A stretch of 64,000 nt of DNA from positions 62,001-126,000 of the IMG/VR virus record IMGVR_UViG_3300006931_000029; one strand, given 5' to 3'. Of this stretch, positions 1,590 to 61,528 are shown one piece after another (within the stretch, counting starts at the first letter, position 1; every line of letters starts with the position of its first letter). The position numbers and the translations under genes were made by a program. Below the pieces are notes generated by a model. That model saw only the letters and a list, made by a program, of their open reading frames with translations, was not told where the DNA came from and made no database searches.

Positions 1590-1916
1590 ATGCCGCACAG
1601 TATCGTCAAGAAACTTCTTGGGGAAGCAAGTCAAGATGCGCGATTCGACGTCAACGCTCGAATCGAAATCTGGGTCACTATTTCGGACCTCGAGTACGAT
1701 CGGCGGATTCAGGCCCTTCAGCAAGACCCGCGTCCAGTGGAGGCTAAAATCGTTGACGCAAAGAAGATTGCCCTGCAGGTCGCTCACGACAAGGTCAATG
1801 AGAAATCTACGGGAGACTTTGACATCACAGCTGACATCAGCATGGAGTCGATGAATGTCAATCGGATCGATTGGGTCGCGCTGGTCAGTCCTCCTCCGCC
1901 TGAGGACGAGGGTTAA
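1590..1916 (+). CDS. hypothetical protein with IVKKLLGE leader (candidate head protein)
   Basis: 108-aa ORF preceded by TATTTAC 3 nt upstream. Its N-terminus matches other small ORFs in the window. Confidence 0.6.
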   Translation: MPHSIVKKLLGEASQDARFDVNARIEIWVTISDLEYDRRIQALQQDPRPVEAKIVDAKKIALQVAHDKVNEKSTGDFDITADISMESMNVNRIDWVALVSPPPPEDEG

Positions 1917-2950
1917 AGTCCGTCTAGCAATCGCTCCAGCGAGTTAATTGAGCTGAACGGCTTTCGCTGTTCGAACGTCTTTACGGCTGCTTTTGCGTCG
2001 TCGTTTGGATCGATACCTTTTGGCAAAGGAGGAGCGACGGTTACCTTGATGATGTTCGTCAGTTTCTTGCAGCTATCCCACGCCGAAGCGATAGCGTCTG
2101 GGTCGAACATCAAACAAAGCTCCTTGATTCCTCGAGCTGTGAGAATTTTGGCTTGTTGTTCCGGGCTAATTTTATGCTTGAAGATGGCGACCGGTACAAC
2201 CTCGTTCGTTCGCAGTTCGTTCTTCAGCGAATAGACGTTGAACATCGATTCGACTACGATTCCGACTTTCGCTTCCGGAGCCCTCAGTCGGTCGATGTCG
2301 TAGACCCAGTAGCGAGAACCTAGTGGGATTTCGTACTTCGTCGGAAACTGCTTCGTCGATGGTTTCTTGCCGGTTTCCGGGTCGGGTTTCGGGTCTCGAT
2401 ACGTCCGTCCTTGGTAGTAAACCACGCGGTCGTATTCCATCACTGGAAAGATGCAAAACGGTTCCCACCTTCCGTCTTCCATCGTGTATCCCGCGCCGGC
2501 ATCTTCGAACGTTTTGAGGTCGAGATTTTTCCGAATTGCCATCTTCTCGATCAGTCTAGCGTATCCGCTTCCTCGGCGTTCGGTTAGCGGTGTGAATCCC
2601 CGCGGAAGTTTGATGTCGTTCGTGACTGCGAGTACGCTTCGCCTAGTTGCGTAGACGGCGTCCAAATCCTTCATCGCGTCGTCAAGCGTGGTCGTATCGT
2701 AGAGAGCGATGTCGCTTAGGTCCGGATCGTGGCCGAGAGTTTTGATCCACGCCAGGAAATCTCCGCCAACGCCACACCGCCAGCAGTTAGTTTTGCCGGT
2801 TTTAAGGTTCACCGACCTGTTGCCGGACTGGTCACCGCATCTGGGTTGCTCGCAGAGCATCACCAGTTCGTCCTGGGACGAACGGGCTTTGACTACTTGA
2901 AACAGTCCCTCGGCGACTGTTTTGAGCTTGCTACCGACTAGTTTTGCCAC
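1913..2950 (-). CDS. DNA primase (Zn finger + TOPRIM; DnaG/gp61-like)
   Basis: N-terminal C..RC....CWRC zinc finger, plus IVVES and LMFDPDA TOPRIM-like motifs. Confidence 0.8.
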   Translation of the reverse strand: MAKLVGSKLKTVAEGLFQVVKARSSQDELVMLCEQPRCGDQSGNRSVNLKTGKTNCWRCGVGGDFLAWIKTLGHDPDLSDIALYDTTTLDDAMKDLDAVYATRRSVLAVTNDIKLPRGFTPLTERRGSGYARLIEKMAIRKNLDLKTFEDAGAGYTMEDGRWEPFCIFPVMEYDRVVYYQGRTYRDPKPDPETGKKPSTKQFPTKYEIPLGSRYWVYDIDRLRAPEAKVGIVVESMFNVYSLKNELRTNEVVPVAIFKHKISPEQQAKILTARGIKELCLMFDPDAIASAWDSCKKLTNIIKVTVAPPLPKGIDPNDDAKAAVKTFEQRKPFSSINSLERLLDGL

Positions 2951-2961
2951 AATGGCAAGAA

Positions 2962-3732
2962 CTATACGTTGGGAACCCCACGGATGAAAGCAGAATCTCT
3001 CATGGCGATGTTTCCACTGATTTCAGGGGTGGGATTGAACGGGAAAATCTCCTCGGGAATAATGACTGCAGAAATCGTTAGGGGCGTCGTGGTGGATTGG
3101 TCAACCCCATTGAACTGAATCGACGAAATCCAGCACTTCTTCATCACAAACGCCATTGAGACTTCCATGCCAGCCGACGCAGAAGCGTTAAGGGCATCCG
3201 CAACGATTCCAGAGGTGTCTTTCGTTGATCCCTGCAAGAAATAGAGCTTGATGTCTTTTTTGAACGTGTCGCCAAGCGGCACAGGAATCTCAGGCAATTG
3301 GACTGACATGTCCTCTGAATTGTACGGTAGCCGGCCGATCCTGCCGAGGATTCTCCAACCGTAGAGAAGCGAGTAAATCTTGGAGCGCTTAAGCTTCGAC
3401 GTCGTCGAAATGTTGTTCGAGTTCGAAAAACCGGTCGTCGCCGAGTCAACCAGAAAATCAATCCGGACTCCGCCAACAGATTCATCAAAACTAGGGTACA
3501 GTCTTGGCGTGTTCAGGGCCTTGACTTCGACCTCTGCAATCCTCGCTTCTGGAAATGTAACTTGCCGCGCAAACTGCACCGTGTCGCCTGGCTGAGGAAG
3601 CTCCAACTGGTTCGAAAATGGCGCGCGGCGGACAGCCGTCAACACGTTCTCCAAGTCAAGAACCCAAAGATCGCCGCGCTGGGCTTCGAACCCGCCGGCG
3701 TTTCCCCAGTTGTTTCGAGACTTGATGACCAT
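2962..3732 (-). CDS. tail tube-like paralog (baseplate tube initiator, gp48/gp54-like)
   Basis: N-terminus NNWGNAGGFEAQRGDLWVLDL parallels NQWGAAGSGLDQQRSDLFYVLL of the tube gene at 7794..8477, and FPEA/CWISSIQF motifs are tube-like. Confidence 0.55.
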   Translation of the reverse strand: MVIKSRNNWGNAGGFEAQRGDLWVLDLENVLTAVRRAPFSNQLELPQPGDTVQFARQVTFPEARIAEVEVKALNTPRLYPSFDESVGGVRIDFLVDSATTGFSNSNNISTTSKLKRSKIYSLLYGWRILGRIGRLPYNSEDMSVQLPEIPVPLGDTFKKDIKLYFLQGSTKDTSGIVADALNASASAGMEVSMAFVMKKCWISSIQFNGVDQSTTTPLTISAVIIPEEIFPFNPTPEISGNIAMRDSAFIRGVPNV

Positions 3733-3735
3733 GAT

Positions 3736-3743
3736 GTATCTAC
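3736..3743. promoter_or_regulatory. bidirectional TANWTAV element between divergent structural genes 15 bp apart
   Basis: TATCTAC lies 4 nt before GTG 3748 (+), and TAGATAC lies 3 nt before the ATG at 3732 (-). Confidence 0.55.
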
Positions 3744-3747
3744 TTTG

Positions 3748-4560
3748 GTGAAATCGTATCTAGGAACTTACGCCGGCATCGTCGAGTCCATCAAGGACCC
3801 GGAAAAACGTGGCCGAGTTAAAGTCAGAGTTCCAACAGTTTATGGACCCGCACAAGGTTCGATCCCGACGACGGACGTTCCATGGGCACTACCTGCTGGA
3901 TTACCTTCCGGCGGCACCAAAAACTCTGGCGGCATTGATTGGATGCCGGAAATTGGCGATCAGGTGTTGGTGCGTTTTCTTGATGGCGAACCAGAGAAAC
4001 CGGTGTGGGAATGGTTCATGCAGAATTCCGAGCAGGCGAAGCAATATCCGTTTCGCAACTACGAAGGAGACACGCCGAATCGCCATGCGCTGCTGACTCG
4101 CTACGGCCAATCGATCGAACTGGCCGAGTCCGGCATCACCGCTGTCACCAGCAAGGGTTACGTTATCCAAATTGTCGATGCTGGTGACGAGATGGACGGC
4201 TCGATTGAAGCTCGAACTGGCAAGGGCTACTTTGTGCAGATGATGGACGCGACTGACCAAATAGCCATCTTCGTGAAGTATGTCAATGCGAACTACGAGG
4301 ATTTGACCTTCATGGGGACAACGTCATTCTTCCAGATGGCTCAAAAATTCGAGATTCTAACACCTCGAACCAACGTCAAATCAGCTCGCATCGACCTTGG
4401 CGATGGGGCAGACGATCCGATCATCCGTAAGTCTGACCTGGAAAACGTTTGCAGTCAAATTGTTGCTTGGGCAAACTCGCACACCCACCCGAAAGTTCCG
4501 CCCACAAACACCCCGCTTAGAACCCGAGTGACGTTCAGCAGGGTGGTCTACGCCGTGTGA
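3748..4560 (+). CDS. baseplate spike / gp5-VgrG OB-fold protein (gpV-like)
   Basis: YAGIVESIKDPEKRGRVKVRVP, WALP, WMPEIGDQVLVRFLDGEPEKPVW and a C-terminal HTH (His-x-His) apex. GTG 3748 is preferred over the track start at 3562. Confidence 0.85.
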   Translation: MKSYLGTYAGIVESIKDPEKRGRVKVRVPTVYGPAQGSIPTTDVPWALPAGLPSGGTKNSGGIDWMPEIGDQVLVRFLDGEPEKPVWEWFMQNSEQAKQYPFRNYEGDTPNRHALLTRYGQSIELAESGITAVTSKGYVIQIVDAGDEMDGSIEARTGKGYFVQMMDATDQIAIFVKYVNANYEDLTFMGTTSFFQMAQKFEILTPRTNVKSARIDLGDGADDPIIRKSDLENVCSQIVAWANSHTHPKVPPTNTPLRTRVTFSRVVYAV

Positions 4561-4573
4561 GATACTTAGGCAG

Positions 4574-5101
4574 ATGAAGCCAAAGGGATATGTCGCACTC
4601 GCCGGAATCAGGGACGCCGAAGGTAAGTCGGTCTCCTTCGAGAAGGCAATCAAATACGGTTGGGTGAAACCCGGTCGTGTCCCTCGTGGTTTCGACCTTG
4701 AACCTGGCACGATGCCGGTCGGTCAAAATCTCTTCCTCGACAACGGTCGACAGCTTCTCGCCTACGTCTGGGGTGGCCGCTCTCCGATGTCCGACTACGC
4801 CTGCCAGAAGTTCGGCGTAGGAACCGGAACAACTCCAGCGGCTGTGATCGATGTAGCCCTCGAATCTCCAGCTCCTTTCTCGGTTGGTGTGACCACCAAG
4901 AACGTGGACGCCATCACCTTCCCAAGTCCGTTCGTCGCAAGAGTTGAGTTTACGATCGGAGCCAGTCAGTGCAACGGTTACCTGCTGACGGAGTTTGGTC
5001 TCTTCAGCGGCAACAATGTCCTTCTCGCCCGCATCGTCAACGCCGGCTTCAACAAGACGTCCGATTGGGCGCCTAGTCTGACGTGGTCGATCCGCTATTG
5101 A
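4574..5101 (+). CDS. baseplate/tail-fibre associated structural protein
   Basis: C-terminal NGYLLTEFGLF..LLARIV..FNKTS..LTWSIRY resembles tail collar/wedge-type proteins. TACTTAG lies 4 nt upstream. Confidence 0.45.
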   Translation: MKPKGYVALAGIRDAEGKSVSFEKAIKYGWVKPGRVPRGFDLEPGTMPVGQNLFLDNGRQLLAYVWGGRSPMSDYACQKFGVGTGTTPAAVIDVALESPAPFSVGVTTKNVDAITFPSPFVARVEFTIGASQCNGYLLTEFGLFSGNNVLLARIVNAGFNKTSDWAPSLTWSIRY

Positions 5102-5117
5102 GCCGTAGTTATCCAAC

Positions 5118-5471
5118 ATGAACATCACGTGCGTTGACACCCAAACGATCGGAGGCAGCTCCGCCCAGGTTTTTGAGATGATTCAGACTGGTGCGGTCAA
5201 AGCCTTGGTGACCCTTGCCAACAACGGCACAAACACCGCGAACTACAAGTTCCAGGAGAAGATTGCCAACACGTGGACGGACATGGCCGCGTTCGGCGAT
5301 CCGTTAAACGACACAATCTCGCCTGCAGAGATTCTCGCCATTTCGGTTGAATCCGCCTATCCTCAGGTGCGCCTGATGGCCAACGCTTCTGGCGGAACTG
5401 AATTTGAATTCGCGGTGCTTCGCTACTTCGTCCGTGGCGACGGTGGCGCGCTTCCGATTCTCTCGCTCTAA
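5118..5471 (+). CDS. hypothetical beta-rich structural protein
   Basis: 117-aa ORF with TAGTTAT upstream and weak likeness to 15068..15514. Confidence 0.5.
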   Translation: MNITCVDTQTIGGSSAQVFEMIQTGAVKALVTLANNGTNTANYKFQEKIANTWTDMAAFGDPLNDTISPAEILAISVESAYPQVRLMANASGGTEFEFAVLRYFVRGDGGALPILSL

Positions 5472-6367
5472 GGGTCCCAGTCGTCGACTGCCCGTCCTGC
5501 TGCTTCTGGGTCGAGCATCGTTATTCCTCTGGAATACTCGTCCAGCACTGGACCTTCATCCAAGTCGGGTTTTGGATTTGGTATGAAATTCGCAGGCTCA
5601 TAGTCTCCTTCCGCTTCCGTGTTCAGAAGCGTGTAGCCGAGCGCTTCGAAAAATTGGTCTTGCTGCGACGGAAACTTCTCGCCTGTTTTCTTGTCGAACT
5701 GCGGGGTAGAGCCAAGCTTCGAAGCGACCAAGTCCATCACTTCCTCCAGAGTAGAGTCGGGAGGAATTGCGTCGAAGATTTTCTTCACGGCAGACGGACC
5801 ACACTTGTTCACGCCGTTGATTCCGTCGCCAGGATCGCCGATGATCGCCAAAGCCACAGCGACTTGAATAGGTTTGTAAACATCCCACCGTTCACAAATC
5901 TCCCTGTCGGTCAGGAGGTGCTTCCGGTTGAGGCAATAATACTCAGACAAGGGACCTTTCAGTTGTTGAAGGTCTTTGTCGCCTGACATGACGACCGCCC
6001 TGATCCCCCGGGACGTTGACTGAGCTACGGCAGTCGCTACCAGGTCATCCGCTTCATAGTCCCCGTGGTGAGCATAGGCGCGGTCTCCAAACGCGTCACG
6101 GACAAACCTGGCAAAGTCCACCAGGTCGTCTTCGTACTCCTGAGGCTTGGGCTTCCTGGGCTTGTTGGTCTTGGGTTTGCCGTCGAAGCAGAAGAGGATT
6201 CGGCTCGGTACGCCGATCTCCGACCGCATTGCGTAAAATAAACTTTTGAACGCGGCAATGAGGTAGCCCCTGTCGACGTACTTCAAGTGGCTTGCTTGAG
6301 CTGCGTAGAAGGATTTTGCAAATAGTCCGTTTGCGTCTACGATAAGGTCCTTGCCATTGTGCTGCAC
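5468..6367 (-). CDS. 5'-3' exonuclease (FEN/T4 RNase H, PIN fold)
   Basis: LIVDANG, FCFDGK, YEADD, SGDKDLQQL and GDPGDGINGV motifs. Confidence 0.9.
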   Translation of the reverse strand: MQHNGKDLIVDANGLFAKSFYAAQASHLKYVDRGYLIAAFKSLFYAMRSEIGVPSRILFCFDGKPKTNKPRKPKPQEYEDDLVDFARFVRDAFGDRAYAHHGDYEADDLVATAVAQSTSRGIRAVVMSGDKDLQQLKGPLSEYYCLNRKHLLTDREICERWDVYKPIQVAVALAIIGDPGDGINGVNKCGPSAVKKIFDAIPPDSTLEEVMDLVASKLGSTPQFDKKTGEKFPSQQDQFFEALGYTLLNTEAEGDYEPANFIPNPKPDLDEGPVLDEYSRGITMLDPEAAGRAVDDWDP

Positions 6368-6380
6368 GGAGTGAAGAACC

Positions 6381-6587
6381 TCACTTACCTTTGAACTTGT
6401 TCAACTCCTCTTTCTCGGCCTTTGCGGCTTCTTCCGCCCATTCTAGTAACCACGTCAGAGCGTAGTCAGGGGTCCTCAATAAGTCAATCGTCATGCCCCG
6501 GTTGCTGGAGGCGAGAATGAATCGCTCTCTCCAGCGAGCCTTTTCGTGGGCGAAGACCCCGTCAACGAAAAAAGTCAGCGTCGAGAT
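6381..6587 (-). CDS. gp51-like hub assembly ORF overlapping the gp26-like gene in the +1 frame, without a nearby ATG
   Basis: The open frame reads ISTLTFFVDGVFAHEKARWRERFILASSNRGMTIDLLRTPDYALTWLLEWAEEAAKAEKEELNKFKGK*. It is not in the ORF track and fills the gap exactly. Confidence 0.55.
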   Translation of the reverse strand: MSTLTFFVDGVFAHEKARWRERFILASSNRGMTIDLLRTPDYALTWLLEWAEEAAKAEKEELNKFKGK

Positions 6588-7314: not shown

Positions 7315-7344
7315 GTCAACTAGAACTACTCGACCAAATAGAAC

Positions 7345-7370
7345 GGCCGTCACCCAGGCAGGTGACGGCC
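7345..7370. promoter_or_regulatory. perfect 10-bp intergenic hairpin GGCCGTCACC/GGTGACGGCC
   Basis: Read directly from sequence. It has no U-tract, and its stem core matches the stem at 42147..42211. Confidence 0.5.
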
Positions 7371-7410
7371 GTCAACTAATGGCTAAATTGCGCCTTGAGG
7401 GCGCAAGACG

Positions 7411-7764
7411 TTACTCCTTTTTGTCGTCCGAATCGTCGTCATCATCGCCTTTGGACTTGTCGTCCTTCTTGGCGGGAGGAGCTTTCTTGTCGTCCTTCTT
7501 GTCGTCCTTCTTGGCGGGAGGAGCTTTCTTGTCGTCTTTCTTTCCGCCATCGACCTTCACGTCGGTGTCGGCCGTAACCGTTTCACCGCCGGACTTCAGC
7601 TTCACGCCGGCCGGCTTGTCCTTGGCGAGTTGCTTGAGCGCCTTCTGGATTTGCTTCGGGTTGCCGGTGATCTGAACGCTGACGGTGGCCTGTTCGCCAC
7701 CTTTCGGTGCGGCAGACTCGGCCTCGCCTTCGAAGATGGAGTCGATGAGTTCGCGTGATTTCAT
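7411..7764 (-). CDS. Lys/Asp-rich low-complexity protein with KKDDKKAPPA repeats
   Basis: 117 aa with a duplicated ~42-nt unit at about 7455-7540 and N-terminal LIDSIFEGE. It lies directly after the tube gene. Confidence 0.6.
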   Translation of the reverse strand: MKSRELIDSIFEGEAESAAPKGGEQATVSVQITGNPKQIQKALKQLAKDKPAGVKLKSGGETVTADTDVKVDGGKKDDKKAPPAKKDDKKDDKKAPPAKKDDKSKGDDDDDSDDKKE

Positions 7765-7793
7765 GGAAAGAAGAGACGAGTAGAAGAGAACGA

Positions 7794-8477: not shown

Positions 8478-8511
8478 GGTAGTATCAGGTAGATTTTACG
8501 CGGCTCGCCGA

Positions 8512-10599
8512 TTAGGCAGGAAGGTTGCTCGTGCCCACGTTCGAGAGGGTTGCACCCGACTTTTCCACCGTCGCCGTGATGATGAAGACTTCGGCGACGT
8601 CGATCGGGATGATCGCGAGGTCGACGATGACTTGACGAGCGTTGCGGGTGTCCGGGGTGTTGTTGGTGTCATCCAGCTGGATGGCGTAACCTTCAACACC
8701 ACGCTCGGACTTGACTGCCTCCATGAAGTTGGTGTAGTCCAGCTTCAGTTGTTGGAAGAGCACGTCGTCGATCGGGTCGAAGGTGTAGCGGCGAGCGATA
8801 TTCGCGAAGCCCTTGAGGATGTAGTTCACGAGCACCACGTTGTGGATAGCCGTGAGCTTGCTCTCGGTACGTTGCAGCGTGCGATCGCCGTAGATTTCGA
8901 TGGAGTTGCCAAGCAGCAACACCGGATTCACCGAGTTGCCATTGCCATACATGGCATTCTTGACGTCCAAAGAAACGTACTTGTAGCGAACTTTCTGCGC
9001 CTCGGGAATGACGCCGCGGATGTCACCTGCGACAGCCTTCCATGGCTTGTCGAGGTCGAAAGTGCGGGCAGCGCAACGGAGATAACCGAGCGACGGTGGC
9101 ACGTATTTCTGAACGCCAGTGAACGTGTCGCTGATTTGGAACCAGTTCCAGAAGAGACACATCCGGTAGTTGTCGATGCGGCCGTTGGCGGAGTAGAGAC
9201 CCGTGCCATTGTGCCAGTCGATAGCGTCGCGAGCGTTGAGATTGTCAGGGATATTGCCCACGCCAATCGCGTTGACCTTGCCGGCGATGCGGGCAATTTC
9301 CTGGTAGACCGCAATCGAGGTGGAATCCGGAACAGCAATGAAATCAACGTCAACCTCATCCGAGTCGGACCGCTCGAACAGCTTCAAGCCGGTCGGCGTA
9401 TCGTCGTTCGGGTCGATGGTGCCGATGTAGTCCTGGTCGGTCACGTTCTCGCCATTGAATCCGCCAGAGAATTCCGCCAAGTTCGACGGCGTGCCAATCG
9501 TGAGATTCCACGGGTTGTACGTGTTGCCTGGAGGCTCCGATCCGAAGACGTGGAAGATCGAGATGTAGCTCGACTTGCCGTTGATGCGAGTCGTGTAGAA
9601 GTTGTCGCTCGCTGGGTCGTTCGAGAGATTGTCGATGCTTTCCACCAACACCGATCCCTGATAGACCAGGAATTTCTTGGTGTCCGGCGCAGAGCCAGGA
9701 GCAACTTGGAGGGTGATGCCCGTCGACTGGCCTTGGGTGTTGGCCCAAGTTCCCGCTGAGTTTGCGAAAACCTGCATCGCATCGGCAGTGGACTGAGCGG
9801 TGACCTTGTAAACAGTCGCACCCGTGTAGCTATCCTGCAGAGGGAGGGCTTGGTAACCGACGTCCGTCTGGTTGGAGGTGTAGAAGAGGATGTCGCCGTT
9901 GGCGCGAACCTCGGACACCTTGATTTCGCGAGTCGTCGAACGATTCGTCTGGGAAACTTTCAGCGTGTCGCCCACCGAGATGTTGGCGTACGTGCCGCTG
10001 ACATTGATCTTGAAAGCGTTTTTGTCGCCGACAACCGTGCCCAAGCCGGTAACGGCAGAGCCGTAGGTCGGAGCGCTGAGGAACGCTTCGGCTTCATTGG
10101 CCGCGTTGGCAGACTCGGACCGACCAACCGTTGCACCGTTGTAGGTGTCAGCAAGAGCGACAGCTTCGCTGCCGACCGACACGAGGGTAATCGTGGTACC
10201 AGCAATTGAGTCGATCTTGGCATTCGGCGTGGTGATCTTGCTCGGTTGACGAACGCGAAGGTAATCACCGGGCGAGAAGAGACTCGCGTTTGGCGTGATG
10301 AGCGAGTAGGTTCCGGTCGAGCCAGAGGCGTTGTTGGACGCCGTCGTGGCGTATTGCTGACCGACGCGAACCACTCGGCAACCATCGCTCGAGTTGGAAA
10401 TCATCGCAACTGCATCGCCCACGAAGCTGCCTTCTAGGGGCGCACCGAATTTGCGGACGAACTCGAAGATGGATGGGCAATTGGTGACCGTGTCGAACTC
10501 GCCACGTTGGGCAATGCCCACGAGACCAGCGCGGAAACGGCTTGTCGGCGTGGTGACTTGGCTGTTGTCGACGACCCTGGTGATGACTTGAGGAAACAT
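8512..10599 (-). CDS. tail sheath protein (gp18-like)
   Basis: FPQVITRVVDNS, GLVGIAQRG, FVRKFG, YVPPS, WKAVAG..RG, VNPV, IYGDRTLQ and CVII-like C-terminus with IIPIDVAEVFII. Confidence 0.92.
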   Translation of the reverse strand: MFPQVITRVVDNSQVTTPTSRFRAGLVGIAQRGEFDTVTNCPSIFEFVRKFGAPLEGSFVGDAVAMISNSSDGCRVVRVGQQYATTASNNASGSTGTYSLITPNASLFSPGDYLRVRQPSKITTPNAKIDSIAGTTITLVSVGSEAVALADTYNGATVGRSESANAANEAEAFLSAPTYGSAVTGLGTVVGDKNAFKINVSGTYANISVGDTLKVSQTNRSTTREIKVSEVRANGDILFYTSNQTDVGYQALPLQDSYTGATVYKVTAQSTADAMQVFANSAGTWANTQGQSTGITLQVAPGSAPDTKKFLVYQGSVLVESIDNLSNDPASDNFYTTRINGKSSYISIFHVFGSEPPGNTYNPWNLTIGTPSNLAEFSGGFNGENVTDQDYIGTIDPNDDTPTGLKLFERSDSDEVDVDFIAVPDSTSIAVYQEIARIAGKVNAIGVGNIPDNLNARDAIDWHNGTGLYSANGRIDNYRMCLFWNWFQISDTFTGVQKYVPPSLGYLRCAARTFDLDKPWKAVAGDIRGVIPEAQKVRYKYVSLDVKNAMYGNGNSVNPVLLLGNSIEIYGDRTLQRTESKLTAIHNVVLVNYILKGFANIARRYTFDPIDDVLFQQLKLDYTNFMEAVKSERGVEGYAIQLDDTNNTPDTRNARQVIVDLAIIPIDVAEVFIITATVEKSGATLSNVGTSNLPA

Positions 10600-10624
10600 G
10601 TGAGTGGTGGTCTTGCTATTCTAA

Positions 10625-11530: not shown

Positions 11531-11557
11531 CGGCCTAATTACGCACCCAAGTCAGAT

Positions 11558-12736: not shown

Positions 12737-12745
12737 CGACTAAGT

Positions 12746-14459: not shown

Positions 14460-14466
14460 ACCCTAT

Positions 14467-15071: not shown

Positions 15072-15514
15072 AGCGACGACCAGCCTGGAACGTTGCTTGC
15101 AACGATTCCCTGCGGATACTGACCGTCGGTCTTCGAGAAACCAAGCTCACCGTACTGAATCTGAGAGATGACAGTCATCTTGACTTTGCCCGTGCCGGTT
15201 GTTCCGGCGAGCTCCAAGTACTGACGCTTCGGATAAACCGTTTGCGTCTTTTGGCCACCAGGGACGAGAGCTTGAGTCGTGCCGAGGTCAGAGAATGGTC
15301 CGTTAGTGTAATCGTCACACTCGCGTAGTTTTGCGCTGACGTTGGACGTGCCTTCATTCACGAGACGAACCTGTGTCGAGACAAGTTGGTCATTGCTGTC
15401 CTGCGGTAGCGTGCCGTTAGCCTTGAGGCGGACAGTCACAAGACCGTTGACAACCGGAGCGTGAACTTCGGTCGTGCGCGTCAGCGGTTGAGGATATTCG
15501 CCGGGCGTGTTCAT
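15068..15514 (-). CDS. hypothetical beta-rich structural protein
   Basis: 148-aa ORF coupled by ATGA overlap. Confidence 0.55.
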   Translation of the reverse strand: MNTPGEYPQPLTRTTEVHAPVVNGLVTVRLKANGTLPQDSNDQLVSTQVRLVNEGTSNVSAKLRECDDYTNGPFSDLGTTQALVPGGQKTQTVYPKRQYLELAGTTGTGKVKMTVISQIQYGELGFSKTDGQYPQGIVASNVPGWSSL

Positions 15515-16572
15515 GCTGCGACCTCCTCGGCAGGAGCGCCATCAGGAGGAGGTAGGTCGAGGTCCGGAGCAGCCGGACCAGCGGCACCACCTTCTTCCGG
15601 GTTCGCCTCGGCGTCCTCTTCTTCAGTAGAGAAGGTACGCAGAAGGTCACGGATTTCGCGAAGGATTTCGAGAGCTTCTGAAGCTTCTTCGTCGACTTCG
15701 ACGTCTTCGACCTCCGCGAGGATTTCTTTGAAGATTGTGCTGTTCACGTTGCTAACTACGCTCTCGACTCTGCCAAAACGCCTGTCCAGGAACGCGGTGC
15801 CAGACCCGCTGCCGGGTTTTGGCAACTTCTTCTCGTCTTCTCGTTTTGGCTGTTCCTTGGAGGGCTTGGTTTTCGAACCGACAGGTGGCGATGGAACGAC
15901 CATCTTGGGCAGCTTCTCAGGAGCAACAGGTGGCTTGTCGGCTACAGGTTTGCCCGTCTTCGGATCGACCTGAGGGACGTTGGACTTTTGGCCCTTGTCG
16001 TCCTTTTTGTCTCCTGGTTTGTTGATGACGACCGGCTTTCCGGTTGATGTCTGTTGGCGCTGAACATTCTGAACGATCCGCTCGATCTTCTTTGAAACGT
16101 CCACTTTCTCGCCCTCGAAGTGCTCGTACTGCCCGTACACGAAATCTCTCAAGGCGAGCACGTGTTTGCACAGGCCAGGACGATTCTTCGGATTCGTGAT
16201 TCTCGGCGCTCGATTCAGCGCCTGGTTCATGCTGTTGGCGCCAACGACAGAAGAGCCTCGCTGCTTATTCGCCCAGGCCCAGCGGTATCGAAAGTCTGGG
16301 CACGTGCAGTCGACCAGACATTCTACTTTTTCCAGCGGTTTCTGTTTACTCGGCTTGAAAAACTTGATGAATCCCTTGTGACGTTTACCAGTTGTCGAAG
16401 GGAAACTCTTGAAATTGAAGATGTAGTACACGGAATCCGTGTAAGCCTCTAAGTCAAGGGGAGGTCCACGGACCGTCTTCGCTCGCATAACTCGCTTCGG
16501 TTCGGATACCGAAACGAGCTGGTCGAATGTGAGTCGCTCGAGGAGGTTTTTTACTTCGCAGAGGCAAGCCAT
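15511..16572 (-). CDS. SWIM-type Zn-finger protein with Pro/Lys-rich linker and acidic tail
   Basis: DCTCPDFRYR...PGLCKH motif. Confidence 0.7.
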   Translation of the reverse strand: MACLCEVKNLLERLTFDQLVSVSEPKRVMRAKTVRGPPLDLEAYTDSVYYIFNFKSFPSTTGKRHKGFIKFFKPSKQKPLEKVECLVDCTCPDFRYRWAWANKQRGSSVVGANSMNQALNRAPRITNPKNRPGLCKHVLALRDFVYGQYEHFEGEKVDVSKKIERIVQNVQRQQTSTGKPVVINKPGDKKDDKGQKSNVPQVDPKTGKPVADKPPVAPEKLPKMVVPSPPVGSKTKPSKEQPKREDEKKLPKPGSGSGTAFLDRRFGRVESVVSNVNSTIFKEILAEVEDVEVDEEASEALEILREIRDLLRTFSTEEEDAEANPEEGGAAGPAAPDLDLPPPDGAPAEEVAA

Positions 16573-17105
16573 TTGAGCTGCGGGACTAGTTCTCCAATAC
16601 CAACAGGGTAGGGTGAAACAGTTCCTGGCGAAGTGATGTGATAGAGTTTGTCCTCGGCTGAATCGAAAGCGTCCTCGGCTGTGCTTCCACCGTCAGCAAG
16701 TTTAGCCTGACCCTTTGACATGACTTGTGTCAACCGGCCGTTCTCTCCAAACAAGACGACCATTCCGGCATCCAACGCCTTTCTGGCTAGCTGGTTGGCT
16801 GGAAGATTTTTGAACTCAGCAGCTTCGGGCATGATCGCCGGCAGGTTTTCTCTGAAAAACTGGCGAAGCATGTCTTGGACGGAAATCGGTCCGTAGACAA
16901 TGATTCCCTCGTCCAGCCCAGGATAGTAGAAAACACCTGTGTCCACGGGAAGGCCTCTTCCAGTCTGCTCTGGATTTACCTTGTTCATCGCGTCGTCGCC
17001 GGCGTCTTCGCCGATCATTTTGCTCACGAACTTCTCGATCCGACGGCGCCGCTGAGCACCAACAGAAGAGATTGCGGCAATGAGCGGTGTGTTATCCTCA
17101 GCCAT
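16551..17105 (-). CDS. hypothetical protein
   Basis: 184 aa with TAGATAG 3 nt upstream; contains FVSKMIGED near the N-terminus. Confidence 0.55.
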   Translation of the reverse strand: MAEDNTPLIAAISSVGAQRRRRIEKFVSKMIGEDAGDDAMNKVNPEQTGRGLPVDTGVFYYPGLDEGIIVYGPISVQDMLRQFFRENLPAIMPEAAEFKNLPANQLARKALDAGMVVLFGENGRLTQVMSKGQAKLADGGSTAEDAFDSAEDKLYHITSPGTVSPYPVGIGELVPQLKWLASAK

Positions 17106-26695: not shown

Positions 26696-27091
26696 TCACT
26701 TGAAGGTCGCAAACGACAGACTGTTCTTGCCGGACTTTGATTTGAGCTGCGCCAGGCCTTCCTTGGTATGCGGGAAAAGTCCTGAGATTGTCCACCCATC
26801 CCCGATGGGACGGCGCGACTGGTCATGGATGAAATCAATCCGGTCGCCGACCTTGTAACCTTCACCACCGCCTGAAGTGTGGACAACGCGCATCTGACCG
26901 GACTGCATCTCTCCGGGATAGTCAGCCGCCTGTACGAGAATGTTGGTTCCTTCTCCTTCTGGCCATCCGTCCCACAGAACGCCGAAAAGAGCATTAGCGC
27001 CAGTCGCAAGATTAACTTGGCCGATAGGAAGGATTGGAGAGCCACGCTCGTTGCGATAGCCCTCGCCGAGAATCTTGCGAACGATACTCAT
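26696..27091 (-). CDS. hypothetical protein with IVRKILGE leader
   Basis: 131 aa, coupled to the upstream gene. Confidence 0.6.
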   Translation of the reverse strand: MSIVRKILGEGYRNERGSPILPIGQVNLATGANALFGVLWDGWPEGEGTNILVQAADYPGEMQSGQMRVVHTSGGGEGYKVGDRIDFIHDQSRRPIGDGWTISGLFPHTKEGLAQLKSKSGKNSLSFATFK

Positions 27092-27345
27092 GCTGTTCCA
27101 GGAGGTGGAGACAACGGAATTTCGGCTGGCGGATGCCGAATGTCGTTTTCAATGCGTTCAAGCATCGTCGAAAGTTTGTTGGACATCTCGTTGATTTGAC
27201 GCGCTCGAGTTACGTCGAACGGTCCGGTTGGTCCTCCTACGAAGCCACCAAGGCGTTCGACGATCTGCTCTAAACGTCGAACTGCTTCGACGAGCGGATT
27301 TTCCTCGTCTTCTTTGAGACCTTTAAGTTTCTGGACGATGCTCAT
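27088..27345 (-). CDS. hypothetical protein with IVQKLKGLKE leader
   Basis: 85 aa with TATTTAG 6 nt upstream. Confidence 0.55.
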   Translation of the reverse strand: MSIVQKLKGLKEDEENPLVEAVRRLEQIVERLGGFVGGPTGPFDVTRARQINEMSNKLSTMLERIENDIRHPPAEIPLSPPPGTA

Positions 27346-27366
27346 GGATGACTAAATACACAGAGC

Positions 27367-50444: not shown

Positions 50445-50470
50445 GTTCTTAATTACACAACCTTTTCCAC

Positions 50471-54300: not shown

Positions 54301-54334
54301 GTTGCGTTAGTAGAACGCCCTTAGCTCATCGGAA

Positions 54335-56197: not shown

Positions 56198-56259
56198 TTT
56201 TCTAATTACAACGTTACTTAGGTCTAAGACCTCCACCCAAACCCATTCTTCAAAAGGTA

Positions 56260-56574
56260 ATGAATCACGTCACCAGAGACCAATTAGCAGACACCTTGGC
56301 CTCCAAGCAAGGGCTCACAACGATCGAAGCGCGCAAGACCGTCGACGTTTTTATCGAAGCGCTGGCCGAAGCGCTGGCCGGTGGAAAGGACGTTGAGCTA
56401 CGAGGACTTGGTTCCTTCACGGTGAAACGCACGCGCCCACGCCCTGGTCGCAATCCGATGAAGCCTGAACAGCAAGTCATCATACCTTCGAGACTCGTTG
56501 TCAAGTTCCGACCGGGCAAGATCATCAAAGGCGGTCTTACTAAGCTGAACGAGGCCGCCGCTCCTGTGACATAA
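56260..56574 (+). CDS. hup: HU/IHF histone-like DNA-binding protein
   Basis: VELRGLGSF..RPGRNP..IPSRLVVKFRPG motif. Confidence 0.92.
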   Translation: MNHVTRDQLADTLASKQGLTTIEARKTVDVFIEALAEALAGGKDVELRGLGSFTVKRTRPRPGRNPMKPEQQVIIPSRLVVKFRPGKIIKGGLTKLNEAAAPVT

Positions 56575-56602
56575 CTTCCTGTTTGGAAGTTCGGAATGGG
56601 GA

Positions 56603-57040
56603 GTGGACTTTTTCGTAATCATACCGGAGAAAAGGAATACCGGGTACTGTTGCGTCAAGTTCTGTCGTCACAAAACTCGAAAGAAGTATCACGACGGAAA
56701 CTTTTGCCGTCGCTGCCGAGATAGGCGATACGCGATCAAAAACCCAGTGTCCTACGCCTGGGACAAGTTGCGTTACAGCGCACGGCGCCGCAAGATTCCA
56801 TTTGAATTGACAATGGACCAGTTTCGTGTTTTCTGCATTGAAACAGGTTACATCGAGCAGAAGGGTAAGTCCAGCACATGTCTGACGATCGATCGAGTCG
56901 ACGCATCAAAAGGCTATGCCATCAGCAACATCCAGACGCTGACACAAACAGAAAATGGCCGCAAATCTTACGTCGACAGAAAGTTGGCCGAGTACAAGGC
57001 TCCTGAGATTGAACCGTACGACGAAGAGAATCCGTTTTAA
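56603..57040 (+). CDS. HNH-like endonuclease
   Basis: CRRC, RRRKIPFELT and TIDRVDASKGY..NIQ..EN motifs. Confidence 0.7.
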   Translation: MDFFVIIPEKRNTGYCCVKFCRHKTRKKYHDGNFCRRCRDRRYAIKNPVSYAWDKLRYSARRRKIPFELTMDQFRVFCIETGYIEQKGKSSTCLTIDRVDASKGYAISNIQTLTQTENGRKSYVDRKLAEYKAPEIEPYDEENPF

Positions 57041-59229
57041 GTGTCGGCTTGAGCCGTGAAGTCGGCTGTGAGGAAGTCGCAATCGTTCACCGCCCCGGCG
57101 AGCGACGTGGTTGGGTCGAAGTCGTCGATCCAGAATTCCTCGTGAAACACATAAATGCCGGCCGAGATCATCCACGGCTGGAACGTTTGCTTCGTTGGGA
57201 AAGAATCGGTCGGGTCGACTTGCCTAATTTCTCGATTGGCAATGTCATAGTAAATGCCGTTTGGCGTTAGGGCAGGTTGTCCAATGTCACCCGGGCGCCC
57301 AACTCGAAAAGCGTCTTTCAACCTGGATTCAACCACGAGAATGTAGTTCATCCACGACTCGGTAGATTCCTGTGTCCAAACAGTGGAGTTGGCGAATACC
57401 GGCTGAGTCTCTGCACTGAGCGTATACGCCCGACGGATCGACTCCAAAGCTTTCTGCATGTAGGTTCGCTTCCACAACCGATAGCCGGAAATCTGGGATG
57501 TCTCGCGTTGAGAACCGAATCGACGGATGTCGATCGTTCTCAGGTATAGGCCGCCGATGTTGACGTCATCCAGGAAGAGATTGACAGTCCCTGGATTCGC
57601 GTTGAAGAAGTCAAAGAAGAGCGTGTCAGGACGACCCGATTGACTGGAGAAGATTGCCGTAGACGCGACCGCTCCCATCGTGGCCGTCATTTTGCAACTG
57701 AGATTGCCTTCGCGAACGTTCACAAACTCAACCACGCCTACAGTCAACTTACCAGAGCCGCTATCGGTTCTTTCGATCGTGAATGAACCAACGTCGCCGT
57801 CAGCAGCCAAGACGTAGGAGTTCGAGTAGATGAACGTGCCAGCATCTTGACCATAAAGGATGAAGCCTTCGAAGAGAACCGTACCGTTCCAGATGACGCG
57901 TACTAGGAAATTGTCCGTGTCTGCCGAGTTATCAGCGAACCGGAACCGAACGGTGTAACGGCCTTCGATTAGTTTGATTTGCCAGTTGAGGAAACTCGGT
58001 CCGTTAAGCGTGGCGGTTTCAGAGCCGTCTGCTGGGATGCCATTGAGGTTCAAGCTACCGAATACTCGCGCAATGCGACTAGGTTCAAAATAGATCGCCA
58101 AACGATAGTGAGCAGTTGATGGGTCGGTAATTTGAGGAGTGAAAGAAACTCCAGAGCCAGGCGCGGGAAGATAAACTCCATCCGGCTGGTAGACTGCGCC
58201 AGATGCAAGGCTCACGTCTGCAACCGGATTCGGCTGGTAGTAAATGGGGACGGCGCGGTACGTGTTGATCTTCAGCCTATTCGACTTCTGCCGCCAAAAC
58301 TGGGCGTCTTCGTAGCTAGGACGAGCTCCTCGCACGGCGAGCGTGGTGGATGGATACGTCAACGCCAGCGACCCTCCGAATGGAGTTGAACCACTGCCAT
58401 CAAATGTTTCTCCGAACCATGTCACGGTCCGCAGGAACCGGTCGTAGACGATTCGATTACGATCAACCAAACCAGGTGAGGCGACAAACGTACGATAGCG
58501 TTCACCATCGTCTTTGAGGGTGTAAATCTCTGATTCGCGTGGGCCGTCGATGTCGGTCACTTGGACGTACAGTCGAGTTGCCCGGCTGTAGAGATCGTTG
58601 AGCTCGTACGCAACGTTGGCAATTGCCGTGGCAACCTTGTTATCGCGATCGGCGAGCAGTTGATCCGGTTCCTTGAACATCGGGACTGAAAGCGGAAGTG
58701 AACCGCTAACGGCCGAACGGCGCGTGCTTCCTTCTGCTAACGACCAAACGTCGGTTGGCGTGACGCCAGAAACGATCGATGCAATAGGCGAAACCTCGAA
58801 AACGCTGGCAACCTTAACGAGTGACTCGTACAGAAGCACGTCTCGAGCATAAAGCTGTCGGTCTGTAGTGATCGCTGCGATTGGGCGCGACGACGGTCTA
58901 ACGTGAGTCACAGCGCCTGGAAAAGCCGGCGTCGCCATGTCAGCCGTCGATGCTTGAAGATCGCCCGTTGGGACGCCCTGCACAGCTGGTCTCGTGGTGT
59001 CCAATCCGAAGACTTCAGCCGCTTCAACAGACACCTCAGAAAGCAACGCCATGAGTATGACGTCTCGGTAGGCAAGTTCGAAATCCCGCGCAGCGTATGC
59101 CGTGGCGTCGATCCCTACGTTTGCGTTGACAACGGTCAGTGCGCTACCTGGTACCCGAGATTGACCCCACGCCAGCGTGGTTGGAAGCGGGATGATTCGA
59201 ACAGACTGAAGAGGAGTCGCGAGGGCCAT
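57037..59229 (-). CDS. large structural protein with beta-sandwich segments
   Basis: 730 aa; GRYTVRFRFA..VRVIWNG is carbohydrate-binding-module-like; TACTTAA upstream. Confidence 0.5.
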   Translation of the reverse strand: MALATPLQSVRIIPLPTTLAWGQSRVPGSALTVVNANVGIDATAYAARDFELAYRDVILMALLSEVSVEAAEVFGLDTTRPAVQGVPTGDLQASTADMATPAFPGAVTHVRPSSRPIAAITTDRQLYARDVLLYESLVKVASVFEVSPIASIVSGVTPTDVWSLAEGSTRRSAVSGSLPLSVPMFKEPDQLLADRDNKVATAIANVAYELNDLYSRATRLYVQVTDIDGPRESEIYTLKDDGERYRTFVASPGLVDRNRIVYDRFLRTVTWFGETFDGSGSTPFGGSLALTYPSTTLAVRGARPSYEDAQFWRQKSNRLKINTYRAVPIYYQPNPVADVSLASGAVYQPDGVYLPAPGSGVSFTPQITDPSTAHYRLAIYFEPSRIARVFGSLNLNGIPADGSETATLNGPSFLNWQIKLIEGRYTVRFRFADNSADTDNFLVRVIWNGTVLFEGFILYGQDAGTFIYSNSYVLAADGDVGSFTIERTDSGSGKLTVGVVEFVNVREGNLSCKMTATMGAVASTAIFSSQSGRPDTLFFDFFNANPGTVNLFLDDVNIGGLYLRTIDIRRFGSQRETSQISGYRLWKRTYMQKALESIRRAYTLSAETQPVFANSTVWTQESTESWMNYILVVESRLKDAFRVGRPGDIGQPALTPNGIYYDIANREIRQVDPTDSFPTKQTFQPWMISAGIYVFHEEFWIDDFDPTTSLAGAVNDCDFLTADFTAQADT

Positions 59230-59277
59230 CGGTTTCGCTTAAGTATCCGTGTTGTTAGGACTGAAACATTCCATCCT

Positions 59278-59421
59278 ATGCTCGCATTCCTCGTAGGTCT
59301 CACCATCGGTGCCGTTGTCGGTGTAATCGCAACAATTCTCGTGTTCCGCAAGAACAAGGGAGTTCAGGCTCAGGCCGAATTGGCCGTTGATGCCGTCAAA
59401 CAGAAGATCGACAAGCACTAA
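59278..59421 (+). CDS. 47-aa single-pass membrane protein
   Basis: MLAFLVGLTIGAVVGVIATILVF followed by RKNK; this is the C-terminal part of track ORF 58903..59421. Confidence 0.6.
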   Translation: MLAFLVGLTIGAVVGVIATILVFRKNKGVQAQAELAVDAVKQKIDKH

Positions 59422-59771
59422 GTCTCGTCGTAGACGGGCATTCCGTTCGTCAGCCTCAGTTGGCGGTATTCCGAGCCAACATCGGCGGTCTGGTACTTCA
59501 CGGTCCAGTTGAAGCCGTTGTGGAAATCCGTCCGCCAAACGTCGCGCGCATCCTCAGGGTGGTGATGCCGAATGTGAAGACTTGGCTGCATGTGAAGCAA
59601 GTTGCCGTCGATCCGATATTCCCACGAGACGTTTGAAATCTTCGGCGTTCCGTTCTGGTGGACGTCAATGACACAAACACTCGGCTCTTTCCCTTCAGCC
59701 TTGTAGAGCAGATAGAGGCGTTGAGGAGTCGTCTGAGTCTGAAGAATGGCTGTGCCGACGACTTCGTCCAT
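59418..59771 (-). CDS. hypothetical protein
   Basis: 117 aa with TACGTAA 3 nt upstream. Confidence 0.55.
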   Translation of the reverse strand: MDEVVGTAILQTQTTPQRLYLLYKAEGKEPSVCVIDVHQNGTPKISNVSWEYRIDGNLLHMQPSLHIRHHHPEDARDVWRTDFHNGFNWTVKYQTADVGSEYRQLRLTNGMPVYDET

Positions 59772-59781
59772 GGTTTACGTA

Positions 59782-60228
59782 TCAGAGCTTCGTGACTCGG
59801 AAGTTTCCTGAAACGGAGACGCGCAACTGGGTTTCTTTCGTATTGTTCACTGCGAGAACCGCGTAGGTGTCAGGCGCTTCGAAGTCCCGCCAATAGTAAG
59901 GGTCCATTTGGTTGTAGGTCGGAACGTCACAAGGAACATAGACGAGAGGTTGTCCAGAGTGGAGGTTCAACTGTTCGAACTCCCCGGAGTAAAGACCGGC
60001 AAACGTGATCGCCATGTTCGTCGTCAACTTCTCGGCAACCTCGTTCTGAGTCACCACGTCGATGTAGTGGACGCTCAGCCACCGAAGACTCAACCGATAG
60101 TTCGGCGGAAGTTTCACTGAGCTGACCAGCACCGACGACATCGGATAAATGATTGACTGGGACATGCAAAACGGAATGTCCAGCCACCGACCGAGAGTGC
60201 CGGTTGGAATGTAAGTTGATGGAAGCAC
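59782..60228 (-). CDS. hypothetical beta-rich structural protein
   Basis: 148 aa with TATTTAA 4 nt upstream of GTG. Confidence 0.55.
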   Translation of the reverse strand: MLPSTYIPTGTLGRWLDIPFCMSQSIIYPMSSVLVSSVKLPPNYRLSLRWLSVHYIDVVTQNEVAEKLTTNMAITFAGLYSGEFEQLNLHSGQPLVYVPCDVPTYNQMDPYYWRDFEAPDTYAVLAVNNTKETQLRVSVSGNFRVTKL

Positions 60229-60255
60229 GGGCTTAAATAAGCCTAAATTTTATTG

Positions 60256-60283
60256 TTTACAAAATCCAGCAGAAGCGTATGGT
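60256..60283 (+). promoter_or_regulatory. sigma70-like promoter
   Basis: TTTACA-N16-TATGGT, 7 nt before ATG 60291; identical geometry to 47648. Confidence 0.65.
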
Positions 60284-60290
60284 GGTTGTC

Positions 60291-60689
60291 ATGGACGAGC
60301 GAGCGCTCACAAACAACCTACTGGGTCGTGGCCACTCCGACTCAACCCCAGTTGCCTTTAGACCCTGGGACACCCTTCACGCACGCGTCACTCAAGGAAT
60401 CGTGGCAGGTGCCGTCGGTGACCTATTGATTCTCAATGCAGTCAATGGCTTGACCGACCAACAAGCCGACATGTTTGCAGCCGCAGAGAAGCGCAGAGAA
60501 CTCGAGGAGTACGAAGAAGGTAAGCGAATCCTCGCCAGAAACCAAGAGCGAGCCCACGGCAAGTGGTTAGCCACCCAGAGGCAACTTAAAGCTCCGCCTC
60601 CATTGGAACGTCAACCTGGGGAAAGCGATGCCGTTTTCGCGCTGAAACAGCTAGCGCGTCACGAATTTCTAAGCAAGTTCAGTAGGTAA
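60291..60689 (+). CDS. hypothetical (probable early) protein
   Basis: The ATG at 60291 fits the promoter geometry. Confidence 0.55.
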   Translation: MDERALTNNLLGRGHSDSTPVAFRPWDTLHARVTQGIVAGAVGDLLILNAVNGLTDQQADMFAAAEKRRELEEYEEGKRILARNQERAHGKWLATQRQLKAPPPLERQPGESDAVFALKQLARHEFLSKFSR

Positions 60690-60692
60690 GAC

Positions 60693-61010
60693 GTGGACCC
60701 GAAAGACCTAGTCGAGCGCATGCTGGAGGACGATGACCGTGACCGGTACGATGACGAACCGAGAGACGGCTCTCTCGTCTATGCCACGATCTATCCAATC
60801 GGCGAAGAAGACGTTGACCTGGTGATTCGTTACCACGCGTCGAAAGCCCACCCTGACGATTCAGGCTACCGCCCAGGAGCTTACCACGTTGAAATCGAGG
60901 AGATTGTTCGAGACGACACAAAGGAAGACATCACGCGCAAGCTGACGCAGGATCAGTTCTACGAGCTGCAAGAAAAAGTCTCAGAACACTTCCACCACTA
61001 CGTCCGATGA
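60693..61010 (+). CDS. acidic hypothetical protein with LVERMLED leader
   Basis: 105 aa with TAGGTAA 3 nt upstream. Confidence 0.55.
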   Translation: MDPKDLVERMLEDDDRDRYDDEPRDGSLVYATIYPIGEEDVDLVIRYHASKAHPDDSGYRPGAYHVEIEEIVRDDTKEDITRKLTQDQFYELQEKVSEHFHHYVR

Positions 61011-61171
61011 GCGATAAATCTAAAACCTACGTCGTCACCAAGAACGGCGTCAAAGTCTCCAGCCCTCTTCCACTCGACGAGGCAAATGCGCAGGCAGACC
61101 AACTTCGGTCTCTGACCGAGAGCAAGGGTGAAACTGCAATCATCTCTGTTGTTCCCACGCTGATGGGATAA
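61007..61171 (+). CDS. 54-aa hypothetical protein (not in track)
   Basis: ATGA-coupled ORF MSDKSKTYVVTKNG...PTLMG* fills the gap. Confidence 0.5.
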   Translation: MSDKSKTYVVTKNGVKVSSPLPLDEANAQADQLRSLTESKGETAIISVVPTLMG

Positions 61172-61177
61172 TTAGTC

Positions 61178-61528
61178 ATGGACGACAAGAAGCCGGACGA
61201 ACTGGTCGAGAAGCTGCTTAACGAAGACCCGGGTGACGAGAAGCTCGATCCGGTTTACGTTCAGCGCAGAGATGACGTTCGTCGTCAAGCTGCTGAGCCG
61301 TCCAGAAAGCCGAATCCACGCGAAATGGAAATCGAGCAGGGTGACGACGATGTCGATCCGGAGGAGCAATTTGAGTTGGACCTTCGCGAAGCGATTGAAG
61401 GAACAATCGAAGGTGCAAGAGCCAGAACTTATGCCGAAAATGGCGTGCTGACCCGCAACAAGGGTTTGGTGGTGGATACGTCCTATGGGACGTTCCAAGT
61501 CACGATCGTTCTGAAGAATCGCGCTTAG
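61178..61528 (+). CDS. acidic hypothetical protein with LVEKLLNE leader
   Basis: 116 aa with TAATTAG 2 nt upstream. Confidence 0.6.
   Translation: MDDKKPDELVEKLLNEDPGDEKLDPVYVQRRDDVRRQAAEPSRKPNPREMEIEQGDDDVDPEEQFELDLREAIEGTIEGARARTYAENGVLTRNKGLVVDTSYGTFQVTIVLKNRA

Follow-up and report, generated by a model that had tools for sequence, protein, structure and literature searches.

A leader peptide shared by unrelated proteins of an uncultivated soil phage, a candidate capsid-targeting and cleavage signal of the T4 type

The IMG/VR virus record IMGVR_UViG_3300006931_000029 is a phage genome of 224,954 bp with direct terminal repeats and a GC content of 53%, and the stretch analysed here, hereafter called the window, is the whole of its 64,000 nucleotides (nt) from base 62001 to base 126000. 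In an earlier reading of the window, made from the letters alone, it was noticed that about ten small proteins open with a short hydrophobic peptide ending in Glu, and it was proposed that this leader directs them into the capsid and is then cleaved off, as happens with the internal proteins of phage T4. The locus thus raises the question of whether the leader is a real and conserved element and, if so, what its function could be. Our analysis, which rests on sequence comparisons, favors the proposed function: we give a probability of about 0.6 to the leader being a capsid-targeting and cleavage propeptide of the T4 type, carried by variable, mostly acidic head-internal proteins. This is the best-supported reading because the leader is in register with those of T4, is borne by the prohead protease, is conserved in the clade on non-homologous cargo, is associated with a late-type upstream element and is present on genes adjacent to the portal gene. 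The support for targeting and cleavage is circumstantial.

A search of sequencing runs found near-identical DNA in rhizosphere and soil metagenomes only, and the phage is therefore regarded as uncultivated. Megablast against cultured phages gave no match, and the closest major capsid proteins (MCPs) of cultured phages, those of Bacillus phages SP-15 and HSE3 and of Listeria phage LIS04, are about 30% identical. Within IMG/VR, at least 59 loci carry MCP segments that are 60-82% identical to the MCP of this phage, and the clade is one of deeply diverged, uncultivated soil phages of roughly 200-240 kb. Four relatives with MCPs 65-73% identical (G001, G002, G003 and G005) were compared whole with the present genome (G000), and further clade contigs or loci (L138, L045 and L067) were used in the comparisons.

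The leader and the proteins that carry it

All ten peptides listed in the sequence-only reading are present where it had placed them. Seven of these N-termini (window 1590, 7764, 15071, 27091, 27345, 60693 and 61178) are solid, the leader lying inside the first 8-16 residues of a compact open reading frame (ORF), and the protease bears a short form (Table 1). The claim was wrong for the 16572 protein and weak for the 17105 protein, and the set turned out to be larger than the ten proposed. When the N-termini of all ORFs were read and the starts corrected, about 17 leader genes were counted in the whole genome, and the motif scan of the whole proteome placed about ten further members outside the window. 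Six leader-type genes make up a hotspot at genome 145-150.5 kb. The tagged set comprises two conserved small proteins beside the portal and about 15 dispersed, fast-evolving and mostly acidic ORFans.

The consensus of the leader is Phi-Phi-x-x-Phi-Phi-(x)-Glu (Phi, hydrophobic), i.e., two hydrophobic pairs with the spacing of an amphipathic helix and then a Glu, with a small or acidic residue next to it on the C-terminal side; M-K-P or M-S often comes before the motif. The leader begins 2-10 residues past the start Met, and its distance from the start codon varies accordingly. All solid leaders end in L/I/M/F-(x)-E, reached inside 10-16 residues, with the exception of that of the gene starting at genome 174318 (+), which ends in Asp, and the P3 residue is Leu, Ile, Met or Phe in every leader.

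Table 1. Leader genes and head or tail genes considered in this work. Positions refer to the window unless marked as genome positions.
Feature	Position	Strand	Remarks
Leader protein, 108 amino acids (aa)	1590..1916	+	Leader MPHSIVKKLLGE; rest an acidic ORFan, isoelectric point 4.5; 18.9 bits
Leader protein, 117 aa	7411..7764	-	Leader MKSRELIDSIFE(GE); Lys/Asp/Pro-rich low-complexity tail
Leader protein, 127 aa	14688..15071	-	GTG start overlapping the upstream stop; contains PTQLVEALLDE; 15.1 bits
Leader protein, 131 aa	26696..27091	-	Leader MSIVRKILGE; folded beta-rich part from near residue 22
Leader protein, 85 aa	27088..27345	-	Leader MSIVQKLKGLKE; first of two overlapping genes that lie downstream of the MCP gene
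Leader protein, 105 aa	60693..61010	+	GTG start; contains DPKDLVERMLE; rest very acidic; 18.9 bits
Leader protein, 116 aa	61178..61528	+	Leader MDDKKPDELVEKLLNE; rest acidic; 16.6 bits
Weak candidate, 184 aa	16551..17105	-	FVSKMIGE lies inward of the extreme N-terminus, at residues 26-33
Members outside the window, from ORF N-termini	genome starts 51199+, 132667+, 147089-, 147373-, 174318+, 183011-		
Members outside the window, added after start correction	genome starts 145146+, 146420+, 48358-, 48026-		
Prohead protease, 547 aa	29784..31427	-	Peptidase_S77 at residues ~1-200; Ala/Lys/Pro-rich C-terminal part
Major capsid protein, gp23-like, 489 aa	28273..29742	-	Pfam Gp23 matches the ortholog
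Tail sheath	8512-10599		
Portal	genome 45610-47448		Pfam Portal_T4, E = 1.3e-23
Large terminase	genome 129937-132006		Not a member (see text)

To find out how far the leader departs from chance, two regular expressions were scanned over the G000 proteins, and their matches were 6.5- and 9-fold denser in the first 16 residues than elsewhere (Fisher p = 3e-5 and 4e-6, respectively). Since both expressions had been derived from G000 examples and were thus post hoc, they were run unchanged on the whole genomes of the four relatives. In G001, the same expression gave 8 N-terminal matches (odds ratio 8, p = 5e-5), and scans that took start codons into account found at least 7 leaders in G003, at least 9 in G005 and a few in G002, which is more distant. 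These related soil phages, with MCPs about 70% identical, each bear a similar number of leaders, mostly on cargo without homologs in the other genomes. A position-specific scoring matrix was also built from the leaders of the relatives only and then scored on the G000 N-termini: nine of these reached at least 8 bits, as against a shuffle mean of 0.92 (maximum 4 in 300 shuffles), and five reached at least 12 bits, as against a shuffle mean of 0.15, while the control windows yielded 0/313 (internal) and 1/313 (C-terminal). At the conserved positions, the Leu, Ile and Val codons vary freely (CTA, CTC, CTG, CTT, TTG, ATC and others), which shows that selection acts on the peptide and not on DNA or RNA.

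These results make it very improbable that the pattern is due to chance, to a compositional artefact or to a signal at the nucleotide level, for example a translation-start element. It is true that short hydrophobic-x-Glu patterns are common, and the simple pattern Phi-Phi-x-E showed no N-terminal enrichment (ratio 1.17). However, an excess of nine over 0.9 obtained with a matrix from other genomes, the empty internal controls and the replication in G001, G003 and G005 are not what chance would give, and a nucleotide signal fits neither the free variation of synonymous codons nor the varying distance between motif and start codon.

Two proteins that resemble members were rejected. The 16572 protein (15511..16572, -) is a conserved protein of 353 aa whose orthologs in the four relatives lose VKNLLE; it belongs to PHROG 18980, a family whose function is not assigned, and has a long Lys/Pro-rich, acidic tail. 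It contains a Cys/His cluster that by eye resembles a SWIM zinc finger, and its gene shares an operon with the genes at 17105 and 15071. The large terminase came up because the copy of one relative fits the regular expression, but it is a Walker-A protein and its N-terminal helix merely resembles the leader motif. As for the weak candidate at 17105, TAGATAG stands directly 5' of its ATG and no homolog was found in the four relatives. Proline-rich C-termini (SPPPPEDEG, LSPPPGTA, SPVSPPDSSPPSS and LPPPDGAP) were seen at window 1590-1916, 27088-27345 and 15511-16572 and at genome 146769-147089, and may be a second shared feature.

Cargo proteins and upstream elements

The sequence-only reading held that the sequences after the Glu are unrelated, and an all-against-all BLASTP bore this out, with nothing significant past the leader apart from a weak similarity (E = 0.009) within the tandem pair 60693/61178. 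Most G000 leader proteins had no homolog (E < 1e-4) in the four relatives, and wherever cargo homologs exist the leader is retained. The 27091 protein has four database homologs (59-93% identity), three of which start with an equivalent leader that ends in G-E directly before the conserved part. The fourth is encoded in contig L138, where its gene occupies the syntenic site behind the protease and MCP genes, and there the conserved part of the 27091 type lies behind a longer N-terminal module that opens with a leader of the 27345 type; the syntenic ortholog of 27345 in that contig shares both its leader and its upstream element. Moreover, the genes just upstream of the portal gene encode two small protein families that are conserved in the clade and have leader-like N-termini. 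In an AlphaFold2 model of the 27091 family, residues 1-20 are placed outside the fold (predicted local distance difference test, pLDDT, 29-38), and residues 24-130 form a beta-rich domain (mean pLDDT 65, predicted template modelling score 0.65), so that the leader is, according to the model, an appended and modular element.

Similarity searches gave little information about what the cargo might do. PHROGs had no family for eight leader proteins, the 1590 protein included, ESM Atlas look-ups with two cargo proteins returned no usable family, and Foldseek against the PDB with the AlphaFold2 model of 27091 gave no match with E < 0.3. As no cargo protein matched a family or a fold, the further suggestions that these proteins are ejected and that they include host-takeover effectors are left unsupported, although the part of the proposal that concerns head targeting and cleavage stands as the best-supported reading.

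We considered whether the leader could be a relic of common descent, that is, the slow-decaying N-terminus of diverged duplicates of a single ancestral small gene, with no shared function. Tandem pairs and arrays would be expected from such an origin and are found at 27345/27091, 60693/61178 and genome 147373/147089, as well as in L045 (three genes) and L067 (four genes), and the similarity of 60693 and 61178 beyond the leader points in the same direction. However, the leader occurs on unrelated proteins that range from 65 to 1190 aa, including in one relative a 450-aa protein that ends in a phage lysozyme domain (PF00959), lysozyme being a typical virion-borne enzyme activity. It also persists between genomes whose cargo shows no detectable homology, and it is borne by the protease, which is no paralog of the cargo proteins. 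Duplication would account for the origin of the leader but not for its maintenance, and we consider this explanation improbable.

The leader genes also tend to have an upstream element, TAnnTA[GA] (commonly GTAnTTAGnC), that is located 0-8 nt 5' of the starts of small leader genes and of adaptor and fibre genes, with a spacing to the ATG that varies (0-5 nt), and further upstream of baseplate wedge (about 12 nt) and sheath (about 20 nt) genes. Examples are at window 27346-27360, 61166-61177 and 60681-60692: TATTTAG is found 7 nt 5' of the ATG of 27345, TAATTAGTC abuts the ATG of 61178, TAGGTAAG precedes the start of 60693, and 1590 has a near-variant, TATTTAC, 4 nt 5' of its ATG. Within 22 nt of the start, the element is present in 8/17 leader genes and in 25/300 other ORFs (odds ratio 9.8, p = 7e-5). 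About half of the leader genes carry it, and several of those that do not come second in a pair of overlapping genes. At the start codons that have the element, no Shine-Dalgarno sequence can be seen; the element could act as a late promoter, from which leaderless or near-leaderless mRNAs would arise, or as a translation signal. Its presence both at leader genes and at sheath, head-tail adaptor, baseplate wedge and tail fibre genes suggests that the former are expressed together with the virion genes, a timing that we infer from the shared element.

The prohead protease and the T4 register

The gp21-like protease noticed in the sequence-only reading was confirmed. Its residues 33-187 match Pfam PF03420 Peptidase_S77, the family of T4 gp21, with 59.7 bits against a cut-off of 27, and the protein falls in PHROG 207 (head maturation protease, E = 1.5e-31). 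His81, Ser144 and Asp171, which we take to be the catalytic residues, are invariant in an alignment of 27 clade proteases and T4 gp21. The N-terminus of the protease, M-P-R-I-L-L-E followed by D, is a short form of the leader; (L/I)-L-x-E is found at the N-terminus of nearly every clade protease examined, with Asp for Glu in one subgroup, and aligns with Q-L-L-I-E of T4 gp21. A C-terminal part of about 300 residues, rich in Ala, Lys and Pro and coiled-coil-like, is fused to the protease in this phage and in all relatives (502-666 aa), and probably replaces a separate scaffold gene of the gp22 type.

The protease gene lies immediately upstream of the MCP gene on the same strand, an order that is kept in L138. 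The match of the MCP to T4 gp23 is marginal (E about 1e-4) and that to the solved T4 gp23 structures weak, and an invariant I-M-L-E followed by N is found at about residues 72-76, near the position that aligns with the maturation cut of T4 gp23. Small proteins of 122-217 aa that are similar to part of the MCP (phmmer E = 1e-6 to 3e-12) are encoded at genome 154071-154508 (+) and by small ORFs in G001, G002 and G005.

In T4, gp21 cuts after L/I-x-E, and encapsidation needs no more of IPIII than its first 10 residues; positions 4 and 7 of the leader are important for targeting and positions 8 and 10 for processing, and the N-terminus of gp21 itself fits the cleavage logo (PMC9026906). T-even internal proteins are highly diverse and have only the conserved capsid targeting sequence in common (PMC3012670). 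The premise that T4 uses short targeting peptides removed after L/I-x-E thus holds, both in the literature (PMC9026906) and in the T4 N-termini that we read in NC_000866: MKTYQEFIAE (IPII/IPIII), MELITELFDE (Alt), MAKINELLRE (gp24), MLKEQLIAE (gp22), MNEPQLLIE (gp21) and MEGLIE (gp67). The hypothetical 54-aa gp61.1 of T4 (NC_000866, 18966-19130, -) starts with MKTFKEFIKE, near the N-termini of IPI (MKTFKEF...) and IPII/III.

The clade leader is in register with those of Alt, gp24 and IPII/III. The Alt sequence is Phi-Phi-x-x-Phi-Phi-x-E exactly and that of gp24 nearly so, and both systems have an N-terminal peptide of about 10 aa that ends in Phi-x-Glu with the register Phi-x-x-Phi-Phi-x-E. 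They are also alike in that a conserved leader stands before mature parts that are unrelated and vary from one related phage to another, in that the gene of a gp21-type S77 protease is located beside the MCP gene, and in that the portal gene has genes of small proteins next to it, like those of the core proteins gp67 and gp68 in T4. The dispersed ORFans, for their part, are comparable in logic to the variable internal proteins of the T-even phages. In contrast with T4, the consensus here has two hydrophobic pairs, often with the preceding M-K-P or M-S, about 17 genes are tagged instead of roughly 8 (T4 has three internal proteins and a few head proteins), and these genes are spread over the genome, many of them with a TAnnTA[GA] of their own abutting the start codon. 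Furthermore, the scaffold-like domain is fused to the protease, whereas T4 has a separate gp22 gene, and no full-length vertex paralog of the gp24 type turned up in a search.

If the leader works as these likenesses suggest, it would bind the prohead core, which is probably formed by the C-terminal, scaffold-like half of the fused protease, and the tagged protein would be enclosed as the gp23-like shell assembles. The Peptidase_S77 protease would then cut after the Glu (hydrophobic P3, Glu at P1) and free the mature protein inside the head, from which some of the mature proteins may exit with the DNA, perhaps to act in the host. A predicted complex between residues 1-205 of the protease (27-row alignment) and the N-terminal 40 residues of the 61178 protein had a score of 0.00, which weighs neither way.

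Several points weigh against such a function. The phage is known from metagenomic DNA alone. The predicted mature parts have isoelectric points below 5.8 in 12 of 16 cases, whereas the T4 internal proteins are basic, and the small, basic, DNA-associated cargo that is typical, if not strictly defining, of IPI-III is not what is found here. Many leader genes are far from the head genes. In a calibration, a comparable pattern was applied to 61% of T4, where it recovered IPII, IPIII, gp24 and Alt but also picked proteins not known to be packaged, such as DNA ligase and Srh, as well as gp2, gp61.1 and others; a single match is thus weak, and the case rests on enrichment. Finally, the 132667+ protein (genome 132667-132924, +) ends in a copy of the motif, PEALVDRLLDS, and internal copies, PSGVVEQLLSED and PSDVVETLLSED, occur in genome 147651-148169 (-) and 149820-150515 (-), each with a GTG at the first Val. 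Such copies are not predicted by a simple model of an N-terminal propeptide; they could represent GTG-started genes or long propeptides, or be the sign of a portable docking peptide.

The last possibility leads to a different explanation, in which the leader is a docking or regulatory helix unrelated to the capsid (for one common host or phage partner, or as a stability or degradation tag) and the cargo consists of unpackaged, cytoplasmic ORFan effectors. Small, acidic and fast-evolving cargo is like many phage host-interaction proteins, the leader genes are dispersed among non-structural genes, internal and C-terminal copies would be expected of a portable linear motif, and the lack of specificity of the pattern in T4 fits as well. 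Nevertheless, the Glu end and the hydrophobic P3 of the motif are the cleavage rule of the S77 protease, and a pure docking helix needs neither. That the protease bears the motif clade-wide, that leader genes are linked to an element preceding structural genes and that two of them adjoin the portal gene are further arguments against this explanation, which we consider rather unlikely.

Keeping to capsid targeting, a more far-reaching version can be entertained tentatively, as a possibility that we do not favor. It is that the peptide is a packaging code, portable to N-terminal, internal and C-terminal positions, by which the genomes of a large clade of uncultivated jumbo phages from soil and rhizosphere each load 10-20 fast-turnover, mostly acidic ORFans to be delivered with the DNA. 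The repertoire would then be several times that of T4, and an injected anti-defence or host-takeover proteome could be listed from sequence alone.

Even without such a code, a leader working as in T4 would allow proteins inside the capsid, perhaps entering the host with the DNA, to be marked from sequence. The packaged class of T4 includes the ADP-ribosyltransferase Alt and the anti-restriction protein IPI*, and the T4 capsid-targeting principle is in use as a protein-delivery tool. Each genome would then offer about 17 candidates for anti-defence or takeover functions, and the clade as a whole hundreds of them; the clade would also provide a second, distant example of the principle, in which S77 protease, L/I-x-E rule and targeting register were kept together over a very deep divergence. 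The principle is known from T4, and its presence in a deeply diverged clade would strike a specialist as plausible rather than surprising.

Other ways of filling a head or shell were also compared. Cleavage sites of the phiKZ type consist of a small residue-x-Glu with Ser, Ala or Gly at P3, and the propeptides are long and dissimilar; the leaders described here, with their hydrophobic P3 residues, do not follow that rule. In the jumbo phages phiKZ, 201phi2-1 and SPN3US, a gp21-like protease that has diverged cuts many head-internal proteins after Glu, and the propeptides are thought to direct incorporation (PMC9026906, PMC5694885, PMC10052503). In contrast with phiKZ, the present phage has a short common leader motif, and its MCP and protease are T4-like. 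Encapsulin cargo-loading peptides are short terminal peptides that load an HK97-fold shell and are not removed by a protease, and in the Dar system of phage P1 protein adaptors (DarA, Hdf), rather than a common leader, load head proteins. The likeness to both is one of analogy only, diverse cargo being directed into an HK97-fold shell with no sequence relationship; the C-terminal and internal motif copies would fit a portable loading peptide.

Neighbouring genes and a second upstream element

Within the window, the leader gene at 7764 adjoins the tail sheath gene. Genes of the replication type are preceded by a different arrangement, a T-rich stretch and then a TTTGTTTACA-like element about 35-45 nt upstream, sometimes in divergent pairs, as seen upstream of window 22587 (ligase), 47683 and 38611. 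This element is probably an early or middle promoter.

ARAGORN predicted a phage transfer-messenger RNA (tmRNA) gene, with the tag peptide GNTIVKAFARSNELRLAA, right after a block of 27 tRNA genes; these genes are located at window 476-830 (-) and in locus L131 14365-19927 (genome 54365-59927).

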